Shown: positions 19,033 through 56,095 of the stretch, piece by piece
Position numbering within the stretch: position 1 is the stretch's first letter
Layout: every line of letters starts with the position of its first letter
Made by a program: the position numbers and the translations under genes
Assembly (NCBI GenBank): GCA_965202585.1
Contig: OZ241827.1
Location: 22,444,001-22,508,000 of the forward strand
Source: Thalia democratica
Taxonomy: Eukaryota
Length of the DNA: 64,000 nucleotides
Direction of reading: 5' to 3'
The notes under the pieces: generated by a model
Databases searched by the model: none
Seen by the model: only the letters and a program-made list of their open reading frames with translations
Told to the model about the DNA's origin: nothing

Positions 19033-19243
19033 TCAACGGGTACTGAAAGCCCTGACTGCATCGCTCTGGTCCAAGTCCGTCCTCCACTTTTTCCGGTCGC
19101 AACCGTGGCAACAGACGCACATCAACACGGTTACTATGGTAACAAAGAAAACTGCCAAGGTCAGAAACATGCTGGCGCGCTTGTTGCAAAAATTTGCGGC
19201 GCACTGGCGAGAGCAAATATTTTTTCCGCTTGAAGTCGCACTT
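19033..19243 (-). pseudogene. Truncated paralog of the Shisa-like gene at 46234-46839
   Basis: Translates as SATSSGKNICSRQCAANFC-NKRASMFLTLAVFFVTIVTVLMCVCCHGCDRKKWRTDLDQSDAVRAFSTR*. It has an in-frame deletion of about 69 nt, an early stop and a decayed 5' part with no signal peptide. Confidence 0.8.
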
Positions 19244-20612
19244 CTGTAAAAGACTAACCGGCAAAAGCTGCGGTTGGTAAGTTAAAAACTTGCGGCATAA
19301 ATTTGATTTAGATGAAAAGTTTTCCAGCAGTTATAAAATTAATTTTACAGAAGTTTTGACAAAAATTTAGCTAAGAACTTATGCCATCAACCATAGCTAA
19401 CAAAAAAAAATATTAAATTTTAAGGATATGATTGAGATTTTATTTAAGACTTAAACTCACTACTATACAATTGCGAGTTCACAAACCGACGTAATCTTAA
19501 ATACTGAGTTGTATAAAAGTCAAAGTAAGTTCTCTTTTTATTTTTATTTTAAAGAAGTTTGAGTTAGTACTCTTTTTATAACCTCATATAAAAATTTTTA
19601 AAGTTCTAATATTATGTCAAAGTTATAATGCTTTTATGAGAATAAATAAAAACATATATTATATGAGACTATATAATATATTTAGTGTTAATTACATATA
19701 AAACTCCTAGACAACGTTTGAAAGTTTAAAAAAACCTGCGTAATTTAATGGCCTTCAAGTTCTCAAACACTTTATTTGGGTATACAGCAAACATTAAATA
19801 TAAAACTAACTAAAGTTAAAGTATATAGTATAAAGAAAATCTTAAAAAAACTTAACTTTAGCTTATAGCTTTTTTTCTACATAAAATTTGTTTTTTTATT
19901 TAGTTAGATTTAATATATTTTTACTCTGACACAAAAAACAAGTTAATGTTTATACAAATTAGGTTGTTCGAAAGTTTAAATGAAAAACACAACAGTATAG
20001 AAAAATATTTGTTAAAACTTTAAACAATTACTTTTTTTTCACTATATCATTTAATTTGTTTTTAGAATACTCCTAAAAATTATAAATTTGTTAATAAATT
20101 CTACTGCATTTTTACAGTTAAGAACAAGTAATTTATAAAAGTGTTTGGAGAATTAACGCTCAAAAATATTTAAGTTTAATCAGAGGAAGTGCTTTTTTTA
20201 TAGGTAACATATTAAACTTAAAGTTCGTAAAAGTTTATTGAAAAATACATTTTGTGAGAAAAACTTGTAAAAATTAAGTTTAATTTTAAACGATACACTA
20301 CGCTTTCTGGTATAAAATGATCAAACGTGTTTTCTTTTTATGTAAGTAATAACACGATCAAATAACCATGCAAACTTTAAAATTCAGCCCTGCCGCAATT
20401 TTGATTTAAAACTTATAATGCTTTAAAAAAATTGTACAAACATGGTAGTTGTCATTTAAAACTACCCAATAGCAGAGATTGAGATTATGGTGCATCAAAA
20501 TTAATGTTTCACAATCTATCAACAACTTAATGTTTAACAAATTAAAAAAAAGAAAAACAATTTTTCTACGCTAAAAATATTTGAAAACTACAAGCGACTT
20601 CCGCTTATTTGA

Positions 20613-23600
20613 CTATTTTTTTTTTACAACAACGTTTTTGTTTTGAGCCTCTTTACTTTTTTGACGCATTCCAACGTTCAGTTTTTGTTTACGTATCAGT
20701 GTCAAACTTTTAGCTTGCTTTTTGGCACACGTCATCCATCCTATTAGAACCCTGTTTGATCCATTTATATGAGTATTGTTCTGATAATCAAATATTTTCG
20801 ACAAGTAGTAGTTCATATAATTAAAATCAAAAAGGTCTCTATTATAAACAGTGAATATTGTTTTTACTTAATTTTACTGTGTATTTGATGCTACAAAGGT
20901 AAATACAGTTGAAATAACTGTACATTTTATATTTATAAATTTAGTTACACGTCAAATAAATCTTTAAAAAAGCAACTAAAGTTTAAATATACACACAAAA
21001 TGTTACTTATCAAAATTTTATTGCGGTTATATTGGTATCAGTTTTTAAAACTTAAAACAGTAATTAATTTCACTAAAAGAGTTTTCACTTAAGTTCTTCA
21101 AAAAAATCATAGAATATCTTACCTATCGAATTTTGAGTAAATGATAGGGTTTATAGCACTTTGTATTGGTATGAGTACAATTAGTGTGAGATTATGAGCT
21201 AAATCGTGTAATGCTTCGCTGGAATTTGTTCTTGTCAACACAAAGAATATATAGACTGGAATCCAGCACAGTTTGTCGACCAGTGTTATTATCAAAATTC
21301 GTAGCCTTGATAAAAATAAAGTTAGTTAATGTTAGCCTTAAAAGTCTTCTTTTTATACTATACTATTTTAACGTAAACTTTTATCAAAACAAAAGTAAGT
21401 TTTAGTTAAACAAACATTAACGAAGAACAAATTAAACTTTTAATTTTTATCGCAATAATGAAATAAAGTGTATTTATGCACTTCAACGCATTAACTCATT
21501 TTTATTTTCACAAACTTAACCCTTTGTTTACTTAGCATTTAGAGCAACTTTTGTTTTTATCTTGATAATTTAAAGCACTAAACATTTGTAGATAAAAAGT
21601 AAAAAAACATATAGTAAGACAAAGGCACCTACTTAGTTTTGAGAAATTTAACAAAAAAAAAAATTTAATACTTATAAAGCTTGCATGCGAAAGAAAGATA
21701 ATATCAAAAGAAAATAAATCATCCAATTTAAATATAGGTTTATCATATTGAGAATAGATTTAAAAAAAAACAATAAAATTTTAAAAACTGTTAGAAATAG
21801 AGTGCATACCTCAAAGCATTTGCTCGTTTTTCTTGCATTTCGTTTAAACTTCTATTTTCATTCAATAAACGGCTACTTTTAGACCTTCGGTAAATTGAAA
21901 AGTAGCAAAAGATGATGACAGTCATCACAATGAGATTGTAGGTCAACGTGATTGTAGAAAAGTACATGTTGGGTGCTTCTTGCGCGTACAAATCAGGAAA
22001 ACAAACGCTTGTTGCTCCATAGTAGCCTATAATGTTCTTTATTTCCAACTGCCTTTGAGGAAAACGGTTTGAAGATTGACTTGTTTCAAAAAAGAAGTCA
22101 TTAAGATCTGCTCTAGACATATTGCCATAGTTTTTGATTGAGTTTAAAGCGAATTCAATTGTCTTTGATTTGTAATCTTTAATAACACTTTTATTGGCCA
22201 CTCTGTTTGAAAAGAATCTTGTCTTTTTTATAACATAATCTTCTGCAAAAACGTCTTTTAAAGCTATCGGCACAATGGCAAAACAAATGGACAAGAACCA
22301 CATGAAAAATATGAAAGCGTAACACATTGGCAAGCTCAACTTGTTAACGTTGAAAGGATTTAGCGAAGTGTAAGTCCTGTACAAGGTCAGCAGCAGAATG
22401 AAGTTTAGAGAGGCCTGTGACGAAACAGTCACCAGAATTCCGGCCCAAGTACAACCGTAACTCGCCCGCCATTCGGGATTTTTCTCACAAAAATTTTCAG
22501 AGTACTCTGTTGACTTGAAGGCGACTATCATGAGGGCGATTCCCATCGCAAAATCTGCAACAGCCAAGTTTGTCACCAGCAGTCTGTTGAAGTAGGTGAC
22601 AGTGTGTTTGTGACTCGCACTGCTTTTCGAAGACTTGCGCAGGTAGTTTGCTATCACGCAAAAATTGCAGAAAATTGTTAAAAAACCGTTGATGTAAATG
22701 AGAATTTTCAAAAACGTGTACTTTATCAGTTCTCTAGAGTCAGAAAAGGCAGTAATTTCGCACTCATCCTTTCCGTTATTACATTGAATAGTTCCGTCGA
22801 ACTTCGATAAATTTTCCAATGTTTTATTCTTGCTGCAAACTACTATATCTTCATCGTTCTTGCAACCAAGCTCGTCTTTGTTATTTGAACAATCACGTAT
22901 GCCATTACACCTTTTCTCAGCACTCAAGCTAGTTTTATCTGGATTACTAAGATCAGTAGAACTCTCGAAAAAATTATACATAAAATTAACCTTATCTAGG
23001 TCATCACAGTAAAACCTCCAAGGGCAGTGCTCTTCTAGTTCATCAAAGTTTTCATTGCACAAATTTAAACCGTCGCACATATAGTCTTCTCGTGGTAATA
23101 AATCCGTGATATTAAGGTGGTACAAACCTTCGCACGTGCTGTTGAAACTTTTTCCATAGCACATTGACAACTGGTTTTGATAAATCGATGAGTTTCTCAG
23201 TCGCAATTCGTGCAAACAGTCGTAGTAGCATTCGTCGTCTTTGTAAAAGCAGTCGATAACACCGTCGCAAAGCTGCTCTTTTTTAATTTTTACAAGGGTG
23301 TTGTACTCATAAATGTCTGGTTTGGTCAAACAACTGTTAATTGTTTTTATTTTTAAGCAATTATAAAACTTTAAAATAGCGAAACTTTATTAAATGCTTA
23401 TTAAACTTTAAAACAATTATGTATATAAAATAAAAATATTAAAAGAATAAACAAAAGCTTGTGTTTTTTTATAAATAGTCCGATCATTTATCTACTCTTG
23501 TTTTGATGTTGTTAATCAGCTCTAGTAGAAAATTGGAACTCACGTATATTGCTGATTTGTTCTACAGAATTTTTCATCAAACTCCGAATCTACAACCTGG

Positions 23601-26600
23601 TTGCAGAACAATGAAAGATCCAATTTATCCCTCATCTCACAAACTTTATTTATCTCAGCCGTATTACTGTCACACAAACACTCGTCTGAAAGATCCGGGC
23701 AGTCAAACAACCCGTCGCAATTAAACTTGGGGTTTATAATCGTTTTGTTGTCAAGGCAACGCGAACACATGAATTTGCCCTTTGAATCGTAACATACATC
23801 GGAGCGGTCGGCACAAACAGATATGTTGTTAAGCAAGTAGAACATCGGTACTAAGACTTGGATATTGGTACTAATATGATACTTTTCATTGACTGCACAT
23901 CTAAAACCAAAAATCTGTCTCGTGTGATAGTCAGAAGAATCGTTGCAATATGAAGCAAGACCTTGGTAAAATGTAAAAGTCCAGGGTATGTACATCGATG
24001 GTTCGTCAATCAGGCACTTGTACAAAGTTGGCGTCTTGCATACATTTTCTCCTACTTCGTCGCTTGCATCCAAGCAATGCTGGATTCCATCGCATAAGTA
24101 GCTCGATGGTAAACACCTCGACCCATTGTCACAAGAAAATTCTTTACAGTCGGCGATAATTAACGACCTGTAATTGGATAAGGATGAAAACTAATGATAT
24201 ACATTTTTACTAAAGATCTTTAAATACATCATAGTTTATATTTTCAAGCAATTGAAATGAGATATAGTACTTTGTTTTTCGAGGATTTAAATTAATAATT
24301 AAAAGATTTTAAAGTAAACACATCTAAAAAATAACTTAGAATGCGGCAAAGTGTTTATTTCTCTTTAAATAGGTATAATAAGATATACAAGTTTCTATGT
24401 TGAACAACAAGTAAAAACAGTTAAAATTTCTTACCTGTTTTCATCGTTACCTGAGGAGCAATCTTGCAAGTTATTATTGACCCACGAAATGGGTATGCAC
24501 CTTTCAAATACGTCATTTTTACAATTGAATTCTCCTATTTTACACTCGAAACCTATTTTACTCTCATCCGCTCCTGAGGAACAGTCAGGAAATCCATCAT
24601 TAACTCGATACCTGTGCAAGCATCTACCTGAAGGACAAGCGAACTCAGAAGAAAAGCAAAAGGGCAAAGGAGATTTCTCATCACTAAAATCTGAGCAATC
24701 TAGTTGGTTATCAAGAACCCATTCTCTGGGAATGCACCTTTTGGTGTCGTCTTTACATTCGAACTCTGTTGCTATATCGCATGTTATTTTAGGAATTTTC
24801 TGTATTTTGTTGTATTTGTCACTTATGTTTATTATAATTAAAGTTAAGCTGAAAAGTAGGTGACAAAAAATTTAAATCAAGCGTTTTATAAAACTTAAAA
24901 TTCGAAAAAATTATATTTTTTTGACAGAAAAAGTTTAAACTGTAAATATAATCTTATTGTGTAAGATATTTTTAAATTAATTATCACAAAAATATTTACA
25001 TTATAATTTGTTTAAAACATATGGTTCGGAGTGACTTTTGTACGGTATAGGTTTAGCACGGTTTTAAACTTAGTTTCAGCCAGCCCTTACCCTGAACCTA
25101 ACGATAACTTTAACCCTAACGCTAACCCTGACCCTTAATCAACTCAGACCCTAACCCTGAATAAACACAACTCTATTCTCTGGGAATGCACCTTTTGATG
25201 TCGTCTTTACATTCGAACTCTGTTGCGTTATCGCAGATTATTTTTGGAAGTTCCTGTGTTTTCGGAAATGCTGTTGTGTTACATTTTCATCTTTCAAAGT
25301 TAAAAGTAGGCTGAAAATTTAGACTAAAAAGCTTTTACTATAAAACGTATAATATAAACGAGTTTGTTTAGTAATACTAAGCTCATTTTAAAAGGGTATT
25401 TTTGAAAGAATCAATGAAATGAGAAATAATTACTTTTTATTTGTTTACACTATACAGCTTTAATAAAATAAACTTTTAGTTGATAATGAAAAGTAATTAA
25501 TTTTTATTAAAGATATTTTGTTATTTGCAGTTTTTATCGCATGAGTAGTCTTTATCAGCTCTTATTTTAATTTAAAAATAAACTTTTGCAAACCTCATTC
25601 AAAAATATTAACCAGTTTTAATATTTATGTAGTTTAAGTTAGTATTTATAAAAACGAATGCTACAAACTTGTATATGGAAATTTTTTACATAAATTTCGA
25701 CTTAAGTTGAAAACTACATTCAAAGTTGTTTTTGATGTTGTATGAAAATTTTATGTAATTAACATTATTATTTAAGCAATTGAGCTTTTAAACCTATAGA
25801 TATATTTTAGATGACAATATATATAGTATAATGTTAGAATTAAATTATCAAAAAAGTAACAAAACACTTAAGGTCATTTAAAAAATATTTACCAAAGACT
25901 TATAATCATCAATTTAGCTAACCCCATTGAGTCCACATTTAATAATTTCATTATATTTACCAACATAGTTTCTAGGATAACAATGATTTACTCCATCTTT
26001 TTTGCATGAAACTTCTTTACTTTCGTCACATTTCAAATATCTTTCGTGTACACAATACTTTGTCATATTATACTTTGATGAAAACATTTTTGACAAACCA
26101 AAGTCATTTCTAATAAAAGTATATATTTTTTACTTTTAAGCTGAGTTTTACTGTTATCAAATTTCTAAATTGTTTTTAAACTTTTTTTTTTTTGTGTCTA
26201 TTTAATGATAGCTTACTATCTTTTAAGCGTTAGTTTCTTTATAAAACGGTTTATAATTACTTCTTAATATTTGTTATCTAAAATAATATTATATCTGTTG
26301 ACTCAACTGCTTTGTTAACTAATCAACAAAGTCGGTTAAAAAAGCATTTTTGTTAGCTAAAACTGTCTACTTAGAATTAACCTTTTAAAAATTGTTTAGA
26401 CTTTTTAGACTTTCAAACAAACTTAACGCCTTTTATAATAAATAAAATGTAAGTAAAACTTAACATGTACTCATCCACCAAACAAGGAAGATCAAAGTCA
26501 CTCGGTTTCAAACCAGAAATTCCACATCTTTTTGCGTTTGCTGAGGCAAATGACCTCGTAACACAAATTTCTACAGTGATATTTTGAACTTCTATTCTAC

Positions 26601-26989
26601 AAACCTGAAGTCCATCTTCTGCTCTGCATGGTAAATCTTTGGTGTGTCTTCGAACTTCAACTAGTATGTTCACTGAACAAATAATCTATTTATTTCTAGT
26701 TCTTAAATTCATTAGTTTTATTTTTAGATAGCTTTTACAACCTTTATAATGTTATTAGTTTATTTTGTAGATTTTACAAGCTAATCTTCAAAGTGTAAAG
26801 ATTAACAGATTTTTTTACGACAAAACTATCGTTCAAGTAATTCAATTTCAAGTTAACAATAGTTAAATTTTTAGTAAAGTGTAACTTTGAAAAAAAATGC
26901 TAACCTTTGTTAATTTGACAATCTGATAAAGCCAAATAATTCAGTCCAAGCAACAAATAAAAAACTATTAATTTGCAATTGAGATACAT
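20613..26989 (-). CDS. LDLa-repeat class A GPCR without LRRs (relaxin-receptor/GRL101-related), copy 1; about 1100 aa
   Basis: Exons 26989-26905 (signal peptide MYLNCKLIVFYLLLGLNYLALSDC), 26672-26471, 26109-25923, 24799-24435 (acceptor uncertain), 24167-23544, 23333-21810, 21305-21123, 20751-20613. Multiple LDLa modules (C..DG..DC...DE). 7TM motifs LAVADF, LYRTY, LCWIP and NPIIY. Confidence 0.85.
25084..25160. repeat. Degenerate telomere-like CCCTAA repeat tract in GPCR1 intron 3
   Basis: cccttaccctgaacctaac...taaccctaacgctaaccctgaccct...ccctaaccctga. A similar motif occurs inside the element at 39674-39937. Confidence 0.55.
25173..25310 (-). pseudogene. Tandem duplicated, truncated copy of the start of GPCR1 exon 4 (LDLa)
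   Basis: PKIICDNATEFECKDDIKRCIPRE* with TGG changed to TAG. It is closer to copy 1 than to copy 2, and the homologous acceptor is mutated. Confidence 0.8.
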
Positions 26990-27889
26990 ACTTTCAATAT
27001 TTAGACTAGCTATGCACTTTTTCAGGCTTTTTCATTATAAACAACCTTCTGAATCACATATATACTAGCTTCAATTTACTTACATATAGTTTATAAAACG
27101 ATAAAAAAGCACTCAAAAAGTTCGGTCTAAGGACCTGGTGTACAAAGGAAATTTTCGGTTATCTAGTCGTACACCACATGCTTATAAATTTTTTACGTGC
27201 TATTACAGCTATTTTTTTATCACTTGTAACTAAAATGACAACTTAAAAATGGTATTTAGTATCACACAGATACTACTCCAACATATTCTATAAAAGTATA
27301 CAAGAAACACAAGCTTAACGTTTAATATAAATAATTACTTGTCGTATATATTTGCTCTATCATACGGTACTTCCGGTAATTGTGATGATTTTTTAATCGC
27401 TTCACGTGTTTACTACTTGAAAAGTGAGAACGTTTTATGACTAAGTTTGAAAACTTTACTGTTTTGTGTAAAATTCAAAGATCAAAATACTTACAAATTT
27501 AACGTTGTCTTGGAAATAATAATTACTTGATAAAATTGTTGTAACCTGCTCAAAATAAACTATTCCTATTCTTTTATAAACTATAGGTAGTTAGAACATA
27601 CTTTTTTGAAACTATTTTAAACTTTTTAGTTAAAGTTATATGGTTAAGAAAAGTTTAATGCTTACAAAATATTTTTAATCTTTTAAAGCTTCTTTTTATC
27701 AGAAACAGAAAGACTTACTGAAAAAAATCTTTTCAAGGAATATTTAAAAAATATTTTTAAATAGGCATAAATTTACTAACAAACATAACCAGAGAATAGT
27801 TATTAAATTTTCATTTGATAATAAAAAACTGAATTTGCTTCCACTACATAGTTGTGATCTAGCTAAAAATATACATCGAATTATAAGTA

Positions 27890-27922
27890 TCTGCTTGGCG
27901 GGCCGCAGTTTACCGACCCCAG
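27890..27922 (-). mobile_element. Isolated hAT/Charlie-like terminus
   Basis: Reverse complement CTGGGGTCGGTAAACTGCGGCCCGC resembles the termini at 30656 and 44525. The partner end was not found. Confidence 0.4.
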
Positions 27923-29444
27923 TTCTAAAGTTTAAGTTAATAGATTTTAAGTTCATACTAATAGAAAATGTACAAATTGAAATAAGCAATTTTTATAATG
28001 TATTTAGTTTTCCTTGTTAATATTAGATAAAACGTGTTTTTACTCATTTATCTCTTAAAAGTTTGTCTTAGTAGTTGACAAGAAAAATTTTACATATTTA
28101 TCGAAACTACATTAAAAGTAATAGTACTAGTTATAAAAGTTTACATATTTTTAAAAATGTAAATTTATGTACTCAAAATGATTTATGTTTGATGGTAGTG
28201 GTAAAAAGAATATACATATTTAAGATCTAAAATAATTTCTATTATTTGTTTTTATAATTAGTTTTATAACAATACAGTTCTACTACAAAAGTTTGTTTGA
28301 ATGAACTATATACGGCAGTTAATTTAAAGTATTTAAACTATTATAAACTTGTTCAAAGATTAAAATAAAATAAAATGGAAAATTAAAAAAAACAGGACAA
28401 TTTTTCTTTCAATTTTTTTAAAACAATTGAATTTTCACTGTTTTTTTTTATCTTTTAAAGTAAATGATCATGAAAAACATTTTGGTTTTCGTTTCACACA
28501 ACCCTCGATTACTTTCGTCATCGTCAAGCTTGTGTCCCCGTAGCTTAGCTGCTCCTCAAAATCTGATGAACTCAGGTTATGTCCTTTATTTTAGCTGAAA
28601 AAGTTGTCTTTCATCTAAAATTTCTTTACCCCAACTTATTTTGACCCACACGCTTCAGTTATACCACCATGCGGAGCATTTTTTTGTTATACTTTATGAT
28701 GATACACTAGTTGAATATTATGACGCCACATATTTTGATTTCAATTTTTTTACAAGTTGGTGCTCTAAGTAATGTTGTCAGTTTTTCTAATTAAAAATTA
28801 GTTTAATTATACAAACATGGTTAAATAAGTAGAACAGTTTTTGTCAGTAATTAAATTGTACCACAAAACAACAATGCTTGTAAAAATTTTACTCATACTT
28901 GAATTTCCAACAAAAAGTTGCAAGCAAAGACTAAAACAGACCCATAGTGACGTTGGATAAGCAATATGTAATTCAATGACGTCATGAAGTAATTTAAGCG
29001 AATGATAAATTACAACTAATAGTAGATTATAAGAGTCGTCGCAACCAAAGTACGAATACTGTCAGTTAACTCAGTTAAATTTTTATACGTTGTAGATAAA
29101 ACGCTTAAAATAAACTCATCACATAATGAACTAATAGCTCTGTATTTGCAATGTTAGCAAATAAATACCAGAGATGAATTTTTAACATAATTGCCACTTA
29201 CACAAGTTTTATGTAGTATTCCACTTGGGTTTTACTTCTATATAAACTATATTTTTTATAAAATGTATTAAAGAAAACAGTTTTAGGTGTATTTTTTTCT
29301 GTACATTATTTCGTATTTTAAAGTTATTTTACAAATTCTAAGCTAACCAAGATAATTTTTTCCACTAATTAGTACTTCATTAGTGAAACCTAAATATTGA
29401 TCAAAGGCTCAATTGTAGTTTTGTTAATTAAGTATTTGAACTTT

Positions 29445-29560
29445 TTGCCTTATTTCCATGTACCTTTATGGAGTCTGCCCCATAAGTACGCATTTTAATT
29501 GAGTTTCCCTTGTATAGTTACGTATTATTGTTGGATCTCCTCGATGAGTACGTATTGTTT
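29445..29560. repeat. Degenerate tandem repeat with a period of about 30-32 bp
   Basis: TAAGTACGCATT (29483), TAGTTACGTATT (29515), TGAGTACGTATT (29545). Confidence 0.35.
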
Positions 29561-30655
29561 TCGTACTTTATCGAAGTTTTTCAATTTTGAAGTTACTCTA
29601 AAGTCTTACTCAACGCTTATTTCCAAATAAAATCACAAATACTGCTTAAAGTTATATTTATGTCGTCATAGAAAATCTAAAAATCATGTTATAGTAAAAC
29701 TTTTTTACACAAAGCATAATAAATGAACTAAAATAAAAATGTACAATAATTAAAAAATCAAAACATTCTGTAATGTTTATCACCATCTGTTTGTATTTTA
29801 TAAATTTATATTCATTTATTCACAAATTGTCCTTAAACTAGCAGTTCTACAAAAATATTACTTTTTGCTGTTGGAAATATTTCTTGTAGCTTATTTAAGT
29901 CATATATAGTGTTGAAAGTTCAAGAAATTAGTTAATGAGTAACGCTTTAATTAAAACTTTATTCACATTCCTTTTAACAAGGTTTTTGTCAATAACTTAT
30001 TTTTAGTTTTAAACACAATTTTGTCATATTTAGTATATTTAAACTACTTTTTTACTATTTATATTTACGCGCTATATGAAAATAGTTTAAGTTCTAAGTA
30101 TTTAAAATTTCCTAATGAAGTTTTGAATAAGATCGTAACATACTTTTATTTCATTATTTAGTAAATCAGTCATGTAAAATTACAAAAGCTTTTTTGTTAA
30201 ACGCTAAAAAAAAACTAAATAGATTTAAAACTATAAAAAAAAAAACTAAATGTATTTTCTAACAATGTTTAGAATATTTTTAAACTTTTAATAATATAAT
30301 AATTAACAACAATCAAATAAACTTTACTTTAATTTCATTAAAAGTAATTTATGTATAAACAGTTTTTAAGTACAAATAATACAGTAGTGACCATTAAAAA
30401 AATCTATTACCTTTTGTACTGATAACTATTTTTTCTTGTTATCAATTTTAACTTAGTTTTTAATATGTAGACTACTTTTTATTAATAAGCTTAAACACAT
30501 AAGTGTATAAAACTTTAGAAGCTTTTTTGCATCAGCTTACTATACTAAAAGTTTAAATAGAGAACTATTCAAAAAGTTACTTTGTTCATTATTTTGTTTC
30601 GTTTTTTTTTCGTAATTTATCATGACAGCTGTAACTACAATTTTACGGTTTAGGC

Positions 30656-42431: not shown

Positions 42432-42516
42432 TGACTCACATTTGCATCAGCACATCATAAGTCGCGTGAATATGAAATGAGCCAATGAGAACGCAATGCG
42501 TGAAAGTTGAACCAAT
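42432..42516. promoter_or_regulatory. Compact regulatory module: AP-1 + octamer + two CCAAT boxes
   Basis: TGACTCA 42432-42438, ATTTGCAT 42440-42447, CCAAT 42482 and 42512 (30-bp spacing). Confidence 0.4.
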
Positions 42517-44250: not shown

Positions 44251-44525
44251 CATGGGTCAGCAGTTTTTTATAAGTGTTGAGCAAAGTTGCTTGCGGGCCG
44301 CAATTAACTAAAATAATTGTCTTAATGATTAAAAAACACTATTATAAATCGAAAAAAAGAAAAAAAATGAAGAAAGTAGCAATTAATAACTATTAAGTTA
44401 AAAGTCTAATTGTAGTTTTTTATCACAACAATTTTTTTTAATTGTTTTGAAAAGTATGATTTTAGCTAAAAAGTTTATCGCCAGCCGTATATTTTTGCTC
44501 TGAGGGCCACAGCTTTCCAACCCTG
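44251..44525. mobile_element. Degraded hAT/Charlie-like MITE
   Basis: CATGGGTCAGCAG...GCGGGCCGCA...GAGGGCCACAGCTTTCCAACCCTG. No intact TSD. Confidence 0.4.
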
Positions 44526-44735
44526 GGTTAGAAAAGGAAGAAGTTAGAAAAATTAGAAAAAGTAGTTTTTAGTGATAGAAAACTTTATTATGCTCAAAAG
44601 ATTTGAATATATTTTTAATGTGATACATAACAAAACCAAACTAAAAAGCTTATCTTATACTACTATATGTTTCCGATTATTTTTACAAAAACAAAAAAAG
44701 AATTTCAAAAGCGAAAATTTATTTTTCGAATCATT

Positions 44736-45684
44736 TCAAACGTGTTTTATCTGTGGAACAGTTTCTTTTTGTCCGCAAACGATGCCGAACATGGCATTCT
44801 TCCAGTTTTTCAGTTTCACGCTTCCAAACGCGTCTTTTATTTTCCGTCTCATCACGGTTGGCGTTTTGAAGGCAATATTTTTCACTTGCTCAACAGTGGA
44901 CGTGTTCTTCTTCTTTTTTTCTGAATAGTAATTAGATGCTTGTTGTTGTTATTTTTTGACAGTTTGTGGTTTTAGTTGCAAAGCTTAGATATTAAAGGAG
45001 ATTTTTGAATGTTTACATTACTACATATTTTTACATAAACCTTTTAAAAAAACAATGTTAAAGTCTAAAAAACGTTATTAATAATTTAAAGATCACACTT
45101 TGTTTCTTTGTATAAAAACAATGTTGTTTTTGTGAAAACTAATAATTATAAACGCTTTATAATTGAAATTAAATGTAGTATTTCAGTTTGAAAGTAATAA
45201 AATATGTCCAAATTAATTAGGATTTCATTACATTCTGTGAATAAACAAAAGTCCATATCTAAAAAAAAAACTTTTCTCGTTCAGTTTTTAGTAGGTTTTT
45301 TAGTGATAGCGTTGTATTCAAATTTTCTAAATAAAATCTCGAGTTGAACCTTGTACTGACCGTAAAAGTGTAAAATAAATTCAGCTCTAACACGCCACCT
45401 ATGGATAATATTTCTTTTTAATGTATTGCGCGTTCAGCGATGTTTTGAGAAATAATCACTACTTATAAGTTCATACCGTTGATCAATTTATCTTTGGTGT
45501 GCTTAAGCTCCGCCGCCTGCCACTTCAACTGGTCTTTTAAACTTTCGTTTTCCTTCTTAGTTTGTTCCAATTCCTTCCACAGCATTCCAACGCCTTTCGA
45601 GTCGATGCTTTCCGCTACCTTTTGCATTTTTTGCTCAGTCTCGAAAGACTCCGACTGCTCCACTAAGATGAACGTTTCCGCCAT
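44736..45684 (-). CDS. Two-exon orphan, coiled-coil N-terminus and basic C-terminus (130 aa)
   Basis: Exon 45684-45477 (LWKELEQTKKENESLKDQLKWQAAELK), donor G|GTATGA, acceptor TATTCAG|. Exon 44920-44736 is in phase (EKKKKNTST...IKHV*). Confidence 0.6.
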
Positions 45685-46233
45685 CGTTATTTAAAAAATC
45701 AAACACAAAACAAAAACAAGACAAAACAGACAAAACTTCACAGTTATTGTGGCTTCAAATAAATACGTTTAATCTTTAAAAAATTTTAAACTGTAGTCAT
45801 GGTAACTACCAGATTTTTTGTTCGCTTTGAGCTTTATGTACTTCAATATTTTAAATTAGTATTTATCAAAAAATTAAATTTATCTTAATTAAGGAAATTG
45901 ATAGTATGAATTTAACTATTGGTTGCTATGATCACAATCTAATTATTTATACAACTTTATTGTTTTTTATTGCGAATCTCAACCAATATCTTCTCTAGAT
46001 GCTTAATATAAATTAGTTCTATTGTAAACTGCAAAGTTAAAGCTAATCTAATGCAAGCTTTAAATAAAAGTTAAAATTCAATATACAAGATGACAACTAA
46101 TGTTAACTCATTGAAAGAGAAATCAAAAAACTTGATTTTAGCGAACCTACGTAACAATAAAAACAAGATACTAACAAAATTTTAGAAATTAAATTTATAT
46201 TTGTATATTTTGAAAATATACAAAAAAAGCACG

Positions 46234-46839
46234 ATGAAATTTCTACTCATTCTCGCGTTTCTCCTTCTTGCTTTACTTCCTGCCTCGATTGCCGACCAGT
46301 GCCGCGTCAACTCCACCAAAGTCGACTGCGCCGATTTCAACTTTCCCGGCGGAGGCTGCTGCGGAAAGTCGTTCTGCTGCGAGTCGGTGTTCGGGAGAAT
46401 TGCGAGAAATGCGACTTCAAGCGGACAAAGTATTTGCTCTCGCCAGTGCGACGAAAATTTCTGCTGTCCGCTTTTCACTTGCTGCCAGCCGAACCTCCAA
46501 GTTGGCAACTCCTCGCAAACTTCCGTGGTCTACTACAAGCGCGCCACCATGTTTCTGACCCTGGCAGTTTCCTTCGTTACCATGGCAACCGTGTTGATGT
46601 GCGTCTGTTGTCACGGTTGCGACCGAAACAGGTGGAGGACGGACTTGGACCAGAGCGAGGCAGTCAGGGCTTTCAGGTCGCGGTACCCGACGGTTGTCAG
46701 GGACACGAGGGCGGTGGTTTACGTTGTCAGGGAGCCGAGAGTGGCCGTTGTCAAGAACATTGTCAGAAACGCGGGAGATTTTCCTCCGAATTACAATGAA
46801 GCGGCTTCTGACTACAACAAGTACCCGATAAGAAAATAA
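46234..46839 (+). CDS. Shisa-like (WBP1/VOPP1/TMEM92-type) single-pass membrane protein with two 6-Cys modules and a PPxY motif (201 aa)
   Basis: Signal peptide MKFLLILAFLLLALLPASIA. C..C..CC..CC occurs twice. TM FLTLAVSFVTMATVLM is followed by CVCCHGC. The C-terminus contains PPNY. Intronless and GC-rich. Confidence 0.8.
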   Translation: MKFLLILAFLLLALLPASIADQCRVNSTKVDCADFNFPGGGCCGKSFCCESVFGRIARNATSSGQSICSRQCDENFCCPLFTCCQPNLQVGNSSQTSVVYYKRATMFLTLAVSFVTMATVLMCVCCHGCDRNRWRTDLDQSEAVRAFRSRYPTVVRDTRAVVYVVREPRVAVVKNIVRNAGDFPPNYNEAASDYNKYPIRK

Positions 46840-48960
46840 ATAAATGAAATGCAATAATGTTATCTTGTTTTTCGTTCATAAGACAAATAAAGACTCAAAA
46901 GTTACAATTCAAAGTTACGCTAAACGAAATTGATTAAGAAACCTTTTTTAAATAGTGACTTATGTTTGATTTTTTTACTTAAAACTAGAACCAAAACCAA
47001 ACTATTCAAACACTACGACTTTTAGTAAAATATAAAAGTGTTAAAAATACTTAAATCAAATTTTAAATGTGCTTTGTACCTATAAGAGAAAGTAGAGCAA
47101 AGTTAGTTGTTTGTAAAAAAAATTAAAAACATGTTATGAAAAAATCATGACACGGTTTTTAAAACTATAAACTGATTTAAAACTAACATCGTATTTTACA
47201 ATTATTAGTTGCACTTTATTTTTTATTATATTTTTAATCACTTCTACATTTATTGTATTTTTTTGTATTTATTTTTAATAAACTTATAATATAGACTAGT
47301 GTAGGTACATAAATTACTTTTACTATATTAAAAAAACATGTAGATTAATGCTTTGAATTTTATAATGTTTGACATCACTAATGCATTAGATTAATGATCT
47401 ACATAATTGTTTTATAAATTTTATATGCTATCTAGCCATATTTATTACATTAATTAAATAGATTGAAATTAAGATACCTTCAAATCTTAAAAAATACAAA
47501 TCTAGATGGGTAATATTTTCAAAAGTACCAGTAAAGTAAAGACATTTTTTTCTCATTTTGCTTTGAACTTGAACATTTGCGTTTTACAAATTAAATTATT
47601 TTATTCAAAGTTTCGTAAAAGACGTTTTTCGTTTGTTCAATATTTGGATATAACTATTTTATAAACAACCTCGTTTAGTTTTTACAGTGAAGTTTGTGTA
47701 TAATCTCTAAAGCTTTTATAATCAGTAAAAAGGTTCTAAAGTTATCTTGATAATAAATAGAATATAATTAATAGAAACAATTAGTTTAAGATATGTTTTT
47801 TATGTAAATTTTACTAATTAAACAAATATAAAAACGATATAATAATACTAAGAAGATACTAAAGAAACTAAAAAAGGTTTGTACTAAGTGTTATTATCAA
47901 AAGTCTATTGTGACTCATAATAGTAAAAAAGCAACAATATAATTGTTTACTAAAAATATATAAAACAAACAATTATAAACTTTTAATGACTGCTTAGATG
48001 TTTTTTTAGTTTGTTTATAAAAAACTTATTTTTTCTTATCAAGGGTAAAAGATTGTTTGTTTTTTTTAAATGAAATATGCTACAACTTCATTTTTCACAT
48101 TAAAAATACTTTTTTATTTTAGGCACCATTTAGAACATAAAACTAAATTTTAAAAAAATTGCGGTTTTGTGTATAGTTTTATGTTGTAATTACAAATGTT
48201 AAACAAATTTGGTTGCTTTCAGTTCCTATGAAAATACCTTAGAAGTTAAATTTCTTTTTTTTTAACACTTCGGTCATTTCACAATAAAAACCTTCGTTAC
48301 TTTAATTTAATTAAGTTAAAGAGGTTTAAAGTGTTCTAACGTGAAAATTTTAAAACGAATTTCACTAACTAAAGTGTGTATGAGAAATTTTTAAGTTTAG
48401 TATTACTGTTTAACTTCTAAAACACAAGGATCTTCTGAAGTTTTTCGTCAAATATGTCAAAATATTTTTGGTTAACTTCATTGATAAGCCGTTTAAATTA
48501 ATCGCGAAAACAAAAAAAAATTGTTTTATTTTATTATACCACTGGAGTAAGTAAGCAAAAGTTCGTGAGCATTAAAAACTTAAAAGAAACTTACTTTAAA
48601 CGCACACTCAAAAGAAACTCGGTCTTTTCTTGTTCACCACAAATGCGACAAAACACAGTTTTACTCACAAAAAACGCTGAAGCTTTCGTGTTTTGAATAA
48701 CGTGAACGGTGTGACAACGTCACCATACAGCATTTCCTGAAGTTTTCTATAAGTAGAATATTTGATGATTCAACGTGTGCGAAGTACAAGTAGCTTTTTT
48801 GTGATATACGTTACTTAAATGCACGATGAAATTGTTTGATAGACAGCTATTTTGTTGATATTCTAGTTTTTTTACATAGTTGTTTTACATTAACATTTTT
48901 AAGTTTTAAGCAGAAAAATGTAAAGTGTGTTTTGTTTTCATTACAGAAAGTTCTTTTATA

Positions 48961-51900
48961 ATGTGCAAATGGAACACAGTACATGGTCTTAGTAACAAAC
49001 GTCATTATTGCAAGTCAATAAATGCTCATTTGTTGTTCGGATTATTCCATTTGTTGGCTTTATCTTATTGCCAGTTAAACAAAGGTTAGCTCGCAATATC
49101 AAAATAAAACATTGTGATTATGTATATTAACTTTTAGTAAAGTTATGCAGAATTAACTAAAGCTTTTTTGTCTTTGTAGCAACTATTGTTTTAAGCTTAA
49201 GCTGGGTAAATAAATGAAATAGATTAGTTTATATTATATTTGTACAGTGAACATACTAATCGAAGTTCGAAGACACACCAGAGACTTGCCATGCAGAGCA
49301 GAAGATGGACTTCAGGTTTGTAGAACAAAAATTGAAAATATCACTGTAGAATTTTGTGTTACGAGGTCATTTGCCTCAGCAAACGCTAAAAGATGTGGAA
49401 TTTCTGGTTTGAAACCGAGTGACTTTGATCTTCCGTGTTTAGTGTAAGAATACTTTTATGTACTAAACTTAAATTGTGTTTCTACTTATTTCAAAAAGAA
49501 ATGAAATTTATGTAACTTGTTTCTAAATAAAACTTGATGAACGTTTAAAATGAGTAAGTTAAGCTAGCAGTATTAAGTTACCATAAACGTTTAGCAAAGT
49601 CATGTTACAATCGAGATGCTCTCAAAGTTTACCGCCACAAAATATTTGTTGAAAGTATTTTATTCAAAAGTTTAATAACCTTCTTCATTTTAAGTAGCTG
49701 AAAGTTATTATAAGTTTTATGGGCTTTCTGTATTAATCCTTCAAAATCTGTTAACACGGCGGTTTTTTTTTATATAATAGAATGCTTGTTTTTTTTTTTA
49801 TTCAATAATTCCTTGATATATTAAGACTTAGCAGATTTAGAAGCAACATATTAAAGAACTTGATTTATTTATTAGAGACGGAACTGGGTATTTTTCGTCA
49901 AAGTATAACATGACAAAGAACTGTGTACACGAAAGATACTTGAAATGCGACGAAAGTAAAGAAGTTTCTATTTTACAGGAAGGAATAAATCATTGTTATC
50001 CTAGAAACTATATTGGTAAATTTGATGACATTATTAAATGTGGACTCAATGGGGTTAGCTAAATTGATGATTATAAGTTTTTGATAAATATTTTTAAACT
50101 ACCTAGAATGATTTGTTACTTTTTGATAATTTAATTCTAACAATAAGCTGTATATATTATCATCAAAAATGTAACTATAGTTTTAAATGCTCAATTGCTA
50201 AAATAATATTGTTAATTACATAAAACTATCATACAACATTAAAAACAACTTTAATCTTAAGGCTAAAGTTTAAGTGAAAGTCTTTTTAAACTTGTTGTGC
50301 TTTTCTTTAGAAAGAATTTAAACCTTTTTTCTCGTTAAATTTGGTTAAAGTTTGTAGCTTAATATTACGAAAGCTCATTTTTAATGTTTAACGAAGCATT
50401 ATAATTATTAAAAGTATAACCAAAAGGCTGAAAACCATTGCAAAAACAAAATTATTCAAAAAAGCAGTGAAAAAGGAGAACTGCTTCTAACTGTAAACTA
50501 AAATTTGATAAAGATATATTTTAAAATCCATGTAAAGTAAACATATTTAAGTATGTACCTATAAGTTTTTATGATTTGATAAGTTTATAAAAAAATTATA
50601 AAAAACGTAGGATTACTAATTAAACTTGCTTTAAAACCTTAGTGTTTTCAAACCTGTAAGCTTTTTAGAAAACGTTTAAGCTTGTATTTACTACAAACTT
50701 TTCAGTGTAAACATGAAAATGAAACGGAGAAGATTTTAATACCAAAAATAACCTGCAATGTAACAACAGAGTTTGAGTGCAAAAACGACACCAAAAGATG
50801 CATTCCAAGAGAATGGGTTCTTGACAACCAAATAGATTGCTCAGATTTCAGTGATGAGAAATTTCCTTTGCCCTTTTGTCTTTCTTCTGAGTTCGCTTGT
50901 CCTTCAGGTAGGTGCTTGCACAGATATCGAGTTAATGATGGGTTTCCTGACTGTTCCTCAGGAGAAGATGAAAGTAGGATGGGTTTCGAGTGTGACGCAG
51001 GAGAGTTCAGCTGTAAAAATGACGTATTTGAAAGGTGCATCCCCATTTCGTGGGTCAATAATAACTTGCAAGATTGCTCCTCAGGTAAAGATGAAAACAG
51101 GTAAGAAATTTTAATTGTTTTTACTTGTAGTTCAACATAGAAACTTGTATATCTTATTATACCTATATAAAAAGAAATAAACACTCTGCCGCATTTTAAG
51201 TTTTTTTTTACAAAAATTAATACTAAATTTCTATAAATTTAGTAAACTTAGTTAAGTACTTTAACTACCAAACAAAAATAAGTACCATTTTAAGTTCGTA
51301 CTATAGTAATATCTAATTAGGTCGATAGTTATCACCAAATGTAAAGAATTTTCTTGTGACAATGGGTCGAGGTGTTTACCATCGAGCTACTTATGTGACG
51401 GAATCCAGCATTGCTTGGATGCAAGCGACGAAATAGGATTAAATGTGTGCAAGACGCCAACTTTGTACAAGTGCCTGATTGACGAACCTCCACTCTATAT
51501 TCCGTGGGCATTTACCTTTTGGAACCATTTCCTTAATTACTGCGACGATTATTCTGACATTAACACAATCCAGATGTTTGGTTTTAGATGCGCGGTCAGA
51601 AAAAAGTATCATCTTAGTACCAACGTCCAAGTCTTTGTACCGATGTTCTACTTGCTTAACAACATATCTGTTTGTGCTGACAACTCCGATGTATGTTACG
51701 ATTCCCATGGTAACTTCGTGTGTTCGCGTTGCCTTGACAACAAAACGATTATAAACCCCAAGTTTAATTGCGACGGGTTGTTTGACTGCCCGGATCTTTC
51801 AGACGAGTGTTTGTGTGACAGTAAAACGGCTGAAATGAGCAAAGTTTGTAAGATGAGAGATAAATTGGATCTTTCAACGTTCTGCAACCAGGTTGTAGAT

Positions 51901-54900
51901 TCGGAGTTTGATGAGAAATTCTGTAGAATAAATCAGCATTATACGTGAGTTTCAATGTAACTATCTACTAAAGATGTTTAACAATATCAAAATTAACTAA
52001 GTTTATACAAATTATTTGTATACATTTTTCAACACATACACGTGTTTTTGGCTTGATGCTGTTTGTCTAAGCCCTAAGGCTTCCCCAGAATAATCAGAAT
52101 TGTTTATATAAATAACACAACAATATAATTTAACTTTAATAATAGATTTAAACAGTACTATTTCTTTATTAAGCTAACACATGTTTCTGTGTGTAAACTT
52201 GTTAACTCACGAAACATGAGTTAGCTTAATAAAAAAAGAGTACTGTTTAATTTTGCTAACTTAACCCACTGAACTTGTTTCGCTAGCATCTCTATTAGCA
52301 AACAAATAAATTTAAAGCTTTGAATAGTTAATTTGTTTTAGAACAAATTTATAAACACCAAACATTCTAAACAAAATAAAGTTACTAATTTTTTCACGTA
52401 TAAGTTTCTATAACACATTTCAAAACCAAAACAATTAACAGTTGTTTGACCAAACCGGACAATAATGAGTACAATACCCTTGTAAAAATTAAAAAAGAGC
52501 AGCTTTGCGACGGTGTTATCGACTGCTTCTACAAAGACGACGAATGCTACTACGACTGTTTGCACGAATTGCGGCTGAGAAACTCATCGATTTATCAAAA
52601 CCAGTTTTCAATGTGCTATGGAAAAAGTTTCAACTACACGTGCGAAGTTGACAGGGAATATACGAGAGATTTACCGAACGGGTCAAATATAACGGACTTT
52701 AAAGAAGATTTTATGTGCGACGGGTCACTATTGTGCAAAGGAAAATTGGATGAACTAGAAGAGCACTGCCCGTGGAGATTTTACTGTGAAGACACGGAAA
52801 AGATTAATTCAAGATCACAAAAACAAAACTTTCTTAAATATATTATAAATCCGCAGGCTAAAACACCAATTATTAGTTCAGATAAAATTAGCTTGAGTGC
52901 TGGGAAAAGGTGCGATGGCTCACAAGATTGCTTCAATAACAAAGATGAGCTTAATTGCGAGAACGATGAAGATATAGTAGTTTGCAGCAAAAATAAAACA
53001 TTGGAAAACTTATCGAAATTCGACGGAACTAGAGAATGCGATAACGGAAAGGATGAGTGCGAAATTACTGCCTTTTCAGACTCTAGAGAACTGATAAAGT
53101 ACACGTTTCTGAAAGTTCTCATTTACATTAACGGTTTTTTAACAATTTTCTGCAACTTTTGCGTAATATCAAACTACCTGCGTAAATCTTCGAAAAGCAG
53201 TGCGAGTCACAAACACACTGTCACCTACTTCAATAGACTGCTGGTGACAAACTTGGCTGTTGCCGATTTTGCGATGGGAATCGCCCTCATGATAGTCGCC
53301 TTCAAGTCAACAGAGTACTCTAGAATTTTTTGCGAGAAAAATCCCGAATGGCGGGCGAGTTACGGTTGTACTTGGGTCGGAATTCTGGTGACTGTTTCGT
53401 CACAGGCCTCTTTAAACTTTATTCTGCTGCTGACCTTGTACAGGACTTACACTTCGCTAAATCCTTTCAACGTTAACAAGTTGAGCTTGCCAATGTGTTA
53501 CGCTTTCATATTTTTCATGTGGTTCTTGTCCATTTGTTTTGCCATTGTGCCCATAGCTTTTAAAGACGTTTTTGCAGAAGATTATGTTATAATAAAAACA
53601 AGATTCTTTTCAAACAGAATGGTCAACAAAAGTGTTATTGAAGACTACAAATCAAAGACAATTGAGTTTGCTTTAAACTCAATCAAAAACTATGGCAATA
53701 TGTCTAGAGCAGATATTAATGACTTCTTTTTTGAAACGAACCAATCTTCAAACCGTTTTCCTCAAAGGCAGTTGGAAATAAAGAACATTTTAGGCTACTA
53801 TGGAGCAACAAGCGTTTGTTTTCCTGATTTGTACGCTCAAGAGGCACCCAACATGTATTTTTCTACAATCACGTTGACCTACAATCTCATTGTAATGACT
53901 GTCATCATCTTTTGCTACTTTGTAATTTACCGAAGGTCTAAAAGCGAAAAACCGACGGAGTTTCAGGAAAAAGAAGAAAAGGCTTTGAGGTGGGTTTGAT
54001 GTTTTTAATATTTAATTTTTACTTAGCAGCATTCTTTTTATTGAAGATAAGTTTTATAAGTCTTCACCGCTTTTATCAATAAGGCAATGATTCAAATAGG
54101 TCGTGACATCAACCTTTTTACTTAAAACATAGGGATATTGTTTTTTAAACAACTTGTCATAAAGTCAAATACGTCTAAATTGTATTATAATGTTAATAAT
54201 ATTTTAAATTTCTAATTTTTTTACTGTGAAAGTCAAATATAAGCTTATAACCTGTTTTCAGTCGGCTTTAAGCATATTTAAGCAATCATCGTAAAATATT
54301 ATACTAATATTTTTCTACTAATATGTTTTATAGTAATCAATATTATATAACATTTGATTTCTAATTTACTAACTGATTTATGCATTGCAGTTTTTTGCAC
54401 AAAAGTTTAATACTGGTTACTACAAGGTTTAGCACGTTTTTGTAAAATAGTAAGTAGTTAAGCTTTTTACAGTGTTTTATGACTATTTATACTTGGGATT
54501 GTTTTTTTTTTTTTTTAATAAAATATTTTTTAAAACTTTTTAAACTACTAGTCTGTTCAAATTTGTACTATCGCATAAAATTTATTAACTATTTGTTTTT
54601 GCCTTATATTATGAACTAATTAAAACTTTATACAAGGTTTTTTTTACATTTATATTCTACGACCAAAAATAAGACTTAGTGTTCAAAAGAAAAATCTAAC
54701 CAATTTTTTTAGCAACAGTCTTACTTGTAAGTTTAAAAAAACTTATTCTTTTCAGATTGCGAATTTTTATAATAACATTAGTAGACAAGTTGTGTTGGAT
54801 TCCTGTTTTTATATTGTTTTTCCTTGTAAGAACAAATTCCAGCGAAGCATTGCACGACTTTGCTCACAACCTCACACTAATTGTACTCATACCAATACAA

Positions 54901-56095
54901 AGTGCTATCAATCCCATTGTTTATTCAAGATTCGATAGGTAAAAATTTACATGCATACAGAATATAACTTAAGTAAAGGGTACTAGTTTAATTGAAACTA
55001 TTTGAAAAAAAAAACTTTTAACTTTTGAAAACAGTTTTAAACATTGCTGCAATTCTTACAATGACTGTGTTTTACATTAACAAATATCGTTTATGATAGT
55101 AAACTGTATCTATTTTCAGTGTAAAATATTTCTAAACGATTTATACATGCTCAAAAAATGTATTTTTCAAGACTTGAAATTTTATTTTATTATGATTGTA
55201 CTTTATTCAAAAGTTAATAATTGTTTTTTTAATTACAACATAAGTAAACAGATTTGTTATTGTATTTATGTTTAGTATAAAACCTACAGATAAATAAACT
55301 ATTAAGATATTTAAACTATTTTTCCATACATAAAGGTATTAGACTAAACTTAATTGCTCTTATCTTTAATTCGAAATGTATTATTATAATCTGTATTTTT
55401 TTAATATTTAGCATAAACTTATTTTTCTTAAAATGTTTTTGTCAAGCTACATAAAAGTAGTTTAGATGTAAAACTATGATAAGTAATGGTGTTTAGTGTA
55501 TTTATCTTTAGAAATTTAAAAATGATTGTTTATCATTAAACATATAAGCATAAAAACTGCAGTTAAAATATATAAGTTATTTTTAAATAAAGTACAGCAG
55601 CAATTGTTGTAAAATTAAAAAACCCAAAATCATGTAACAAAAAAGCATGATTATTGCTAAAACGTGGTTTATTAAGCTAAATTTAAATTATTATACTTTT
55701 TGGAATTTTTTTAGACCTTAATACATATTTTTGCATTACTTACATTTGTTCTATTTTCTTTTTTATTTACCAAAAAAAAAAACATTAATATAATCACTTA
55801 ATAACTATAATTAAAATCTTAAAAGCTTTTAGATAAAAAAAAATTAAGTGTCGTACCATTTTATATCTAAAAAGCACTTAGACTTGAAATTTTTCGACAA
55901 AAACAAAATTGTTAGACATTTAAACAAATTCGCAGGTTTTTGATAGAATGGATGACGTGCGCCAAACAGCAAGCCCGAAATTTGTCGCTGAAACGTAGAG
56001 AGAAATTGAATGTTGAGAAGCGTCGCATAGATGAAAAAACTCAGTATAAAGCCAACATTATATCGCAAACAGAAATCAGCGAAAGCGGCCTGTAG
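48961..56095 (+). CDS. LDLa-repeat class A GPCR without LRRs, copy 2; about 1135 aa
   Basis: Exons 48961-49084, 49248-49443, 49876-50053, 50706-51100, 51321-51944, 52442-53989, 54756-54938, 55936-56095. All are phase-consistent (3408 nt). Same architecture as copy 1, with NPIVY in TM7. Confidence 0.88.

Follow-up and report, generated by a model that had tools for sequence, protein, structure and literature searches.

A permuted inverted pair of LDLa receptor genes and a relic of a small neighbouring gene in the pelagic tunicate Thalia democratica

A 64,000-nucleotide stretch of the Thalia democratica genome (hereafter the window; G000:C2:22444001-22508000 of the 801-Mb assembly in which all genome searches were made) carries two inverted copies of a gene for a G-protein-coupled receptor (GPCR) with LDL-receptor class A (LDLa) modules. 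Sequence from a second gene, which is small and codes for a single-pass membrane protein, accompanies both receptor copies and stands after the receptor in one arm and before it in the other. The locus raises the question of how two neighbouring genes came to be copied with their order exchanged, and whether the repeated linkage marks a receptor and its adaptor. The reading favoured here, which we hold at slightly better than even (about 0.55), is a lineage-specific local duplication, most likely produced by one DNA-level rearrangement of the replication type with template switches, or by an equivalent circularly permuted copy.

Layout and age of the inverted pair

Self-comparison of the window gave a single set of inverted matches and hardly anything more. 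Blocks within 20663-26683 pair with blocks within 49237-56024 at 82-95% identity, and more sensitive searches added weak colinear extensions of both arms, as far as 20408/56277 at the outer edge and 27104/48890 at the inner edge. A separate inverted pair joins 19043-19245 (minus strand) to 46405-46676 at 90-92% nucleotide identity; a further 36 nucleotides (nt) of this shorter copy match the 3' end of the small open reading frame (ORF). The features concerned are the following:

19010-19245, minus strand: relic of the small gene, judged dead, corresponding to 46405-46854
20408-27104, minus strand: receptor copy 1, LDLa plus seven-transmembrane (7TM) GPCR, one arm of the inverted duplication
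46234-46839, plus strand: small 'Shisa/WBP1-like' gene, 201 amino acids, intronless and intact (uninterrupted ORF, with an ortholog and an RNA contig)
48890-56277, plus strand: receptor copy 2, LDLa plus 7TM GPCR, the other arm

The receptor copies stand head to head about 22 kb apart, copy 1 on the minus strand (~20.4-27.1 kb) and copy 2 on the plus strand (~48.9-56.3 kb). The relic is 27 kb away from its source, with 1.2 kb separating it from where the receptor arm ends. Read in the direction of transcription, arm 1 consists of receptor and then fragment, and arm 2 of small gene and then receptor. Because the fragment lies beyond the receptor 3' end in arm 1 and the gene lies before the receptor 5' end in arm 2, the arrangement is not a simple inverted copy of a two-gene block. 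Such a copy would place the fragment to the right of 27.1 kb; neither there nor at the other colinear position, to the right of 56.3 kb, was a trace of the small gene found by tblastn or sensitive blastn.

These results confirm an earlier, sequence-only reading of the locus, which had described LDLa-GPCR and Shisa-like sequences as an inverted pair in permuted order. Its second Shisa-like copy stands as a homologous fragment but not as a gene, since what is present is a truncated, internally deleted relic. It had also reported no third copy in the window. This holds for both genes: no further copy of the small gene was found anywhere in the genome by single-sequence and profile searches, which makes it single-copy, and the next paralog of the receptor pair is 32% identical, so the window receptors form an isolated young pair.

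An assembly artefact, raised with that reading as a possible source of the pattern, and likewise a haplotype duplicate, are ruled out by the 6-18% divergence and many indels between the arms and by the occurrence of both forms in independent DNA contigs. Three public runs have DNA contigs that span 46.1-52.1 kb, and in two of the three (runs X2 and X3) they hold a 70-nt skip that is specific to the fragment; the relic therefore exists in raw data.

The two pairs gave similar estimates of neutral divergence. Between the receptor copies 33 of 272 four-fold degenerate sites differ (0.121, that is 0.12), without significant heterogeneity along the gene (chi-square p 0.21), and the intron blocks that can still be aligned beside receptor exons are 86-94% identical (divergence 0.06-0.14). 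The relic differs from the small gene at 18 of 198 aligned bases (0.09), a number of sites that gives low power. It had been proposed that very different divergence of the two pairs would indicate independent duplications; no such difference was seen (0.12 vs 0.09), and co-duplication in one local event therefore stays viable. As judged from these sequences, the divergence fits one local rearrangement, or two close in time.

A receptor ortholog on a European Nucleotide Archive (ENA) metagenome contig (P0002, locus L033) shows 69% identity and is equally far from copies 1 and 2, with a synonymous divergence (dS) of about 1.0 to each, so that the duplication is younger than the split from this relative. 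An old duplication masked by gene conversion was considered in view of the unalignable introns and of the spread of synonymous differences (pS 0.04-0.46 in windows along the gene). It found no support at four-fold sites, either in the heterogeneity test given above (p 0.21) or in the longest identical run (P 0.17).

The 236-base relic is, to judge from its reading frame, dead, and there is no second small gene. It lacks codons 1-57 through 5' truncation and carries an in-frame deletion of 69 nt net (46465-46534) and a frame-shifting deletion of 145 nt (46677-46821), after which it reads ...RAFSTR followed by two stops. Among its 18 differences from the parent gene 13 are non-synonymous; dS is 0.13 (synonymous 5/41.7 = 0.12), the non-synonymous divergence (dN) 0.088 and dN/dS 0.67, a ratio to be expected of one constrained branch and one neutral branch. 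It appears that only ~450 nt of the 3' part of the small gene were ever visibly copied. The relic sits within an 82-codon open frame (19036-19281, minus strand), which from its first methionine would code for a predicted 46-amino-acid peptide with a transmembrane segment (TM) and a short tail.

Both ends of the relic are sharply placed. A marine metatranscriptome contig of 636 nt matches 46233-46854 at ~98% identity, unspliced, and then turns to 17 A, which sets the poly(A) site of the small gene at ~46854; AATAAA signals adjoin the stop codon, upstream of this site. The last homologous base of the relic, 19010, corresponds to 46854 and so falls at the parent poly(A) site within 3 nt. No A tract was found after the relic. 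At the other end, the best colinear trace of a 5' extension (19287-19249 vs 46335-46373) was reached by 98 of 1000 shuffles; this faint similarity is not significant, and the 5' edge is therefore sharp.

The hexamer TTACAG occurs at both ends of the relic, at 19249-19244 on the 5' edge and at 19009-19004 directly after the 3' end. Two of the six bases of the 5' hexamer, AG, are also explained by homology to the parent. The pair of hexamers may be a target-site duplication, microhomology or chance, the last at ~1 in 100 by our estimate. The 145-nt gap can be placed as GT..AG, with weak splice-like sites, and its edges share a 2-nt AG microhomology. In the intact gene the same interval (46677-46821) starts with GT and ends with AG, and its splicing, if it occurred, would remove the whole tail with its PPNY motif and leave a product ending in ...RAFSTR.

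Origin of the permuted order

After the split from the nearest metagenome relative, the ~7-kb multi-exon gene of the LDLa receptor, which resembles glycoprotein-hormone receptors, was copied in inverted orientation ~22 kb away. Under the favoured reading, the replication-type event behind this copy would have gone on from the receptor block by a jump of ~10 kb back to the small gene, and both pieces would have been deposited in inverted sense. The small-gene copy has since decayed by 5' truncation, two deletions and a frameshift, with a miniature inverted-repeat transposable element (MITE) inserted alongside. Replicative template switching, known as fork stalling and template switching or microhomology-mediated break-induced replication (FoSTeS/MMBIR), is documented, in those parts of the reports that are drawn on here, as a source of inverted duplications with out-of-order templated pieces (PMC4352052, PMC11293582, PMC3907307).

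A single event is favoured because the relic, in an 801-Mb genome, lies 27 kb from its source and 1.2 kb from the receptor arm, in the same inverted sense and with the same age. One local event would be expected to give such a placement, which is improbable for an insertion drawn from the whole genome. A circular intermediate, as the sequence-only reading had suggested, formally yields the observed order if the segment from 46405 to ~56300 was closed into a circle, opened again at a point between small gene and receptor, and integrated in inverse orientation; the homology into 46.86-48.8 kb that a simple circle would bring with it was not seen. Template switching is free of this constraint, and the fragment therefore need not run on into 46.86-48.8 kb. 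The other route proposed there, a tandem array followed by an inversion, was not supported. With S for the small gene and G for the receptor, no single inversion of S-G-S'-G yields S'(-) G(-) ... S(+) G(+) when the cases are enumerated by hand; the route needs at least three receptor units and a loss, and the 22-kb spacer contains no receptor relic.

Several observations weigh against one DNA-level event. No junction sequence proves it, and the 1.16-kb spacer that separates relic and receptor arm has no match in the source region. The end of the relic at the poly(A) site and the flanking TTACAG are not predicted by a DNA-level model, and their coincidence is unexplained. Most intron sequence cannot be aligned between the arms although neutral divergence is only ~0.12, so the age estimate is not fully secure; our guess is that fast indel and transposon turnover has removed the similarity. 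The receptor splice sites were placed without RNA, and the positions of the second-exon donor and of the LDLa-exon acceptor differ between the copies.

The nearest alternative has two local DNA-level events, distinct but close in time: the receptor gene alone would have been duplicated in inverted orientation, and a ~450 nt piece from the 3' part of the small gene would have been inserted, likewise inverted, at a staggered break 1.2 kb beyond the 3' end of receptor copy 1. The sharp edges of the relic, the 6-nt direct repeat at its ends, the 1.16-kb spacer without homology to either source flank and a relic divergence (0.09) at the low end of the receptor range are all in its favour. It requires a chance landing of the piece beside the paralog of its source's neighbour with matching orientation, for which we estimate ~1 in 40 if insertion is local; it adds the coincidence of equal ages, and it leaves the boundary at the poly(A) site unexplained; we regard it as possible, if doubtful.

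That boundary is what an RNA origin would account for, the relic being then a 5'-truncated retrocopy, or a complementary DNA (cDNA) taken up at a break, that arose apart from the duplication of the receptor. The last matching base of the relic is the very position, 46854, at which the parent mRNA contig turns to 17 A; identical TTACAG hexamers flank the relic as a target-site duplication would, its 5' end is truncated, and the internal 145-nt gap is bounded by GT..AG. Yet a landing within 30 kb of the parent in an 801-Mb genome has a probability of ~1 in 10,000 under uniform insertion, and the relic has no poly(A) tract. The parent is intronless both here and on the metagenomic DNA contigs of the relative, so that intron loss is no criterion, while the weak GT..AG sites and the AG microhomology at the gap edges are such that an ordinary deletion fits. 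These coincidences were, moreover, noticed after the fact, and we consider this origin unlikely. A variant in which mRNA of the small gene itself served as template for the relic at a break 27 kb away, by local cDNA capture or as an RNA-templated patch within the receptor-copying accident, would cover the poly(A)-site end, the flanking hexamers, the 5' truncation and the closeness to the source; it appears to us quite improbable, and the RNA-derived readings, also when taken together, are improbable. A single DNA-level rearrangement remains the preferred explanation.

The reverse relationship, in which the relic would represent an old intron-containing parent and the gene at 46 kb its retrogene, was prompted by the ttttacAG that precedes the relic. 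It was rejected because the intronless gene is already present in a relative (dS 0.74) while relic and gene differ by ~0.1, and because neither an upstream exon nor an A tract after 46854 was found in the genome.

Mobile and repeated sequence surrounds the relic:

18678-18763, plus strand: direct repeat D2b, 86 nt, with its partner D2a at 19544-19629 (83-87% identity)
18799-18996, minus strand: MITE, 198 nt, bounded by terminal inverted repeats (CAGG...CCTG) and flanked by a perfect 8-bp target duplication, GTGTACAC

Transport of the relic by a transposon was rejected, as the MITE has its own perfect 8-bp target duplication, which leaves the relic outside, and the bracketing 86-nt repeat is local only. 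The insertion site of the MITE is 6-13 nt beyond the 3' end of the relic, and the element is secondary to the relic; its terminal inverted repeats read CAGG(A/G)TTT...AAACCCTG. The MITE looks hAT-like and is also present at 16622-16796, with a piece at 57003-57050. A first look genome-wide gave about 2000 (1966) candidate members of the family at 77-84% identity, the other copies being ~60 nt longer at the 5' end.

The D2a/D2b pair encloses a unique stretch of 298 nt, the relic and the MITE, and is local, not dispersed. The 298-nt stretch, which lies before the relic, has no other match in the genome. The sole other genomic match of D2 (L027, G000:C6:63889520-63889581) is 61 nt long, 87% identical and ~3 kb from a decayed receptor paralog.

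The receptors, the small gene and their linkage

Eight receptor exons were traced in both copies through conserved open frames and GT-AG sites. For copy 1 the predicted exons are, in order of transcription:

26903-26989, minus strand: predicted signal-peptide exon
about 26476-26673, minus strand: predicted exon
about 25917-26080, minus strand: predicted exon
about 24434-24780, minus strand: predicted exon
about 23543-24180, minus strand: predicted exon
21794-23329, minus strand: predicted large exon with TM1-5
21122-21304, minus strand: predicted TM6-7 exon
20616-20750, minus strand: predicted tail exon, followed by the stop

For copy 2 they are:

48961-49086, plus strand: predicted signal-peptide exon
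49246-49441, plus strand: predicted exon
49897-50053, plus strand: predicted exon
50708-51101, plus strand: predicted exon with 3 LDLa
51320-51945, plus strand: predicted exon
52446-53996, plus strand: predicted exon with LDLa remnants and TM1-5
54757-54939, plus strand: predicted TM6-7 exon
55937-56092, plus strand: predicted tail exon, with the stop at 56095

None of the eight exons contains an internal stop in either copy. Pfam searches identified Ldl_recept_a in three stretches (E 1.5e-22) and 7tm_1 (E 2.2e-10), the latter again in the TM6-7 exon (E 2.7e-5), and the NPxxY motif reads NPIVY/NPIIY. With 7tm_1 and LDL-receptor class A modules in one gene, joined by predicted GT-AG sites, the receptor belongs to the LDLa-containing rhodopsin-type GPCRs.

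Amino-acid identity between the copies is 86% in the large exon. Over 977 aligned codons dN is 0.087 and dS, by the method of Nei and Gojobori (NG86), is 0.27; in windows along the gene the proportion of non-synonymous differences (pN) is 0-0.04 in the TM core and 0.16-0.29 in parts of the ectodomain. This pattern indicates that the TM core is under strong constraint and that the ectodomain is evolving fast, and both copies look functional.

Two alignable non-coding blocks directly follow receptor exons, one at 50054-50252 (vs 25722-25916; 88% identity) and one at 51102-51210 (vs 24325-24433; 94% identity), and in each case the rest of the intron cannot be aligned. Their retention could reflect a role in splicing or regulation, an alternative exon so far unrecognised, or gene conversion over short tracts.

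The closest relatives of the receptor were found on Tara and other marine metagenome contigs. Relatives in tunicates carry the same pair of Pfam domains; the best named one, at 28% identity, comes from the ascidian Clavelina lepadiformis. Within the genome the receptor family gave at least 66 matches. Among them is an array on contig 9 (G000:C9:7.69-8.03 Mb, loci L006-L013) in which at least nine paralogs follow one another in tandem at ~30-35 kb spacing. Each paralog of the array is an uninterrupted open frame of ~1030-1040 amino acids, 30-31% identical to the window receptor, and, unlike the window pair, seems to have no introns in the part that was matched.

The small gene is a genuine gene: it is expressed, as the metatranscriptome contig shows, and it is under constraint. 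Its ortholog (P0001), 207 amino acids long and 63% identical, is an uninterrupted ORF on four contigs from marine metagenomes; between the two, dN/dS is 0.28 and dS 0.74. The contigs of this relative measure 0.8-2.1 kb, too short to show a neighbouring gene. By inspection, the small protein has a signal peptide at residues 1-20 (MKFLLILAFLLLALLPASIA), one TM at ~104-122, three N-glycosylation sequons, the juxtamembrane sequence CVCCHGC and, in the tail, PPNY at 184-187; signal peptide, TM, CVCCHGC and PPNY are all invariant in the ortholog on the same kind of inspection. The ectodomain cysteines follow the pattern C-x8-C-x9-CCG-x3-CC, then C-x3-C-x4-CC-x4-CC (C23, C32, CC42-43, CC48-49, then C68, C72, CC77-78, CC83-84). 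The first six fit C*C*CC*CC, which we take to be the arrangement of WBP1/VOPP1-type 'Shisa-like' proteins.

Searches for relatives of the small protein were otherwise negative. Pfam-A hmmscan returned no family at E <= 0.1, and with the threshold relaxed to E <= 10 the protein, its ectodomain and the ortholog gave none either (Shisa_N, WBP-1, CYYR1 and VOPP1 included), one unrelated noise match aside. A profile search of 1.84 billion representative proteins gave no distant homologues, its matches being the ortholog and a 64-amino-acid fragment. A feature search with a protein language model placed WBP-1, CYYR1, VOPP1 and Shisa clusters among the nearest, all with scores <0.9 and hence as leads only. 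The AlphaFold2 model, built on a two-sequence alignment, was too poor for a fold search, with a mean predicted local distance difference test score (pLDDT) of 38 and a predicted template-modelling score (pTM) of 0.23. By similarity the small protein is an orphan, and 'Shisa-like' fits its architecture only.

At 46904-47104 the summed depth of contigs from three DNA runs rises from ~100 to 8,000-12,000, and loose ends lie at 46953, 46971 and 47110. The jump in depth points to a very high-copy repeat ~100 nt past the small-gene poly(A) site.

The repeated linkage had been taken to suggest a receptor/adaptor module. Receptor and small protein could form such a module, selected and copied as a unit: the ortholog has kept the PPNY motif, receptor copy 2 has the intact small gene 2.1 kb ahead of it in the same direction of transcription, and there is a precedent in WBP1L, a similarly built PPxY adaptor, which recruits ligases of the NEDD4 family and reduces the amount of CXCR4, a GPCR, at the cell surface (PMC6991692). 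The linkage, however, is repeated through one duplication only, and the second copy of the small gene is dead. The genome holds one copy of the small gene and at least 66 matches to the receptor family; the small-gene relatives expected beside other LDLa-GPCR paralogs were found at none of them, because no such relative exists there. The sole RNA contig spans the small gene but includes no receptor 5' exon, a weak point, as contigs testify to presence and not to absence. That two genes are neighbours in one genome is, moreover, no evidence of interaction, and a selected module is highly unlikely to explain the pair.

Apart from these genes, an uninterrupted ORF of 335 amino acids at 58588-59595 (plus strand) matches the calpain catalytic domain over nearly its whole length (Pfam Peptidase_C2, E 2.2e-53). 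Its GC content is unusually high, and long open frames are present in other frames too.

Comparison with known systems

The locus is an ordinary local gene duplication in which local copying, decay and transposon insertion can be followed as they shape a fast-evolving tunicate genome. The receptor pair is young and still intact, in a pelagic tunicate whose LDLa-GPCR family has undergone strong expansion. The locus also holds an expressed, conserved, lineage-restricted single-pass protein that has the architecture of a PPxY adaptor and goes unrecognised by sequence models. The copy of the gene fragment is local and ends at the parent poly(A) site and, if it were a discrete insertion, would bear on RNA-templated repair in animals.

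Like other LDLa rhodopsin-type receptors, the window receptors have several LDLa modules ahead of 7tm_1, and among solved structures the nearest to their TM region are LHCGR, TSHR and FSHR. They differ in that no leucine-rich repeats were detected in the exons scanned, in an identity of 28% or less to named proteins, and in the strong expansion of the family in this genome. Their counterparts in the glycoprotein-hormone/relaxin receptor clade are presumably the LGR type C and the Lymnaea GRL101-like receptors.

With the Shisa/WBP1/VOPP1/CYYR1 adaptors the small protein shares the signal peptide, a cysteine-rich N-terminus with CCG...CC, one TM, cysteines at its cytoplasmic end and a PPxY motif in the tail. 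The Shisa family is described by an N-terminal C*C*CC*C*CC*C, a signal peptide, a single TM, cysteines at the cytoplasmic end and an [LP]PxY tail motif (PMC10531659). The small protein reads C*C*CC*CC plus a second cluster, not the exact C*C*CC*C*CC*C, its tail is not proline-rich, and it matches no Pfam model of Shisa, WBP-1, CYYR1 or VOPP1 even at E 10.

The relic resembles a processed retropseudogene in its 5' truncation, its 3' end at the mRNA poly(A) site and perhaps its short flanking direct repeats. It differs from one in having no poly(A) tract and in lying 27 kb from its parent instead of being dispersed.

A close parallel to the whole arrangement is found in FoSTeS/MMBIR rearrangements, such as those of the duplication-inverted triplication-duplication type (DUP-TRP/INV-DUP), as far as the parts of the reports cited above describe them. 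The rearrangement seen here differs in being old, fixed, germline and known from one genome, in having junctions too decayed for template switches to be read, and in containing no triplicated segment. Junctions with at most a few bases of microhomology are counted as shared with those cases, and so are an inverted copy that lies near its source and a short out-of-order segment taken from nearby in the same sense.

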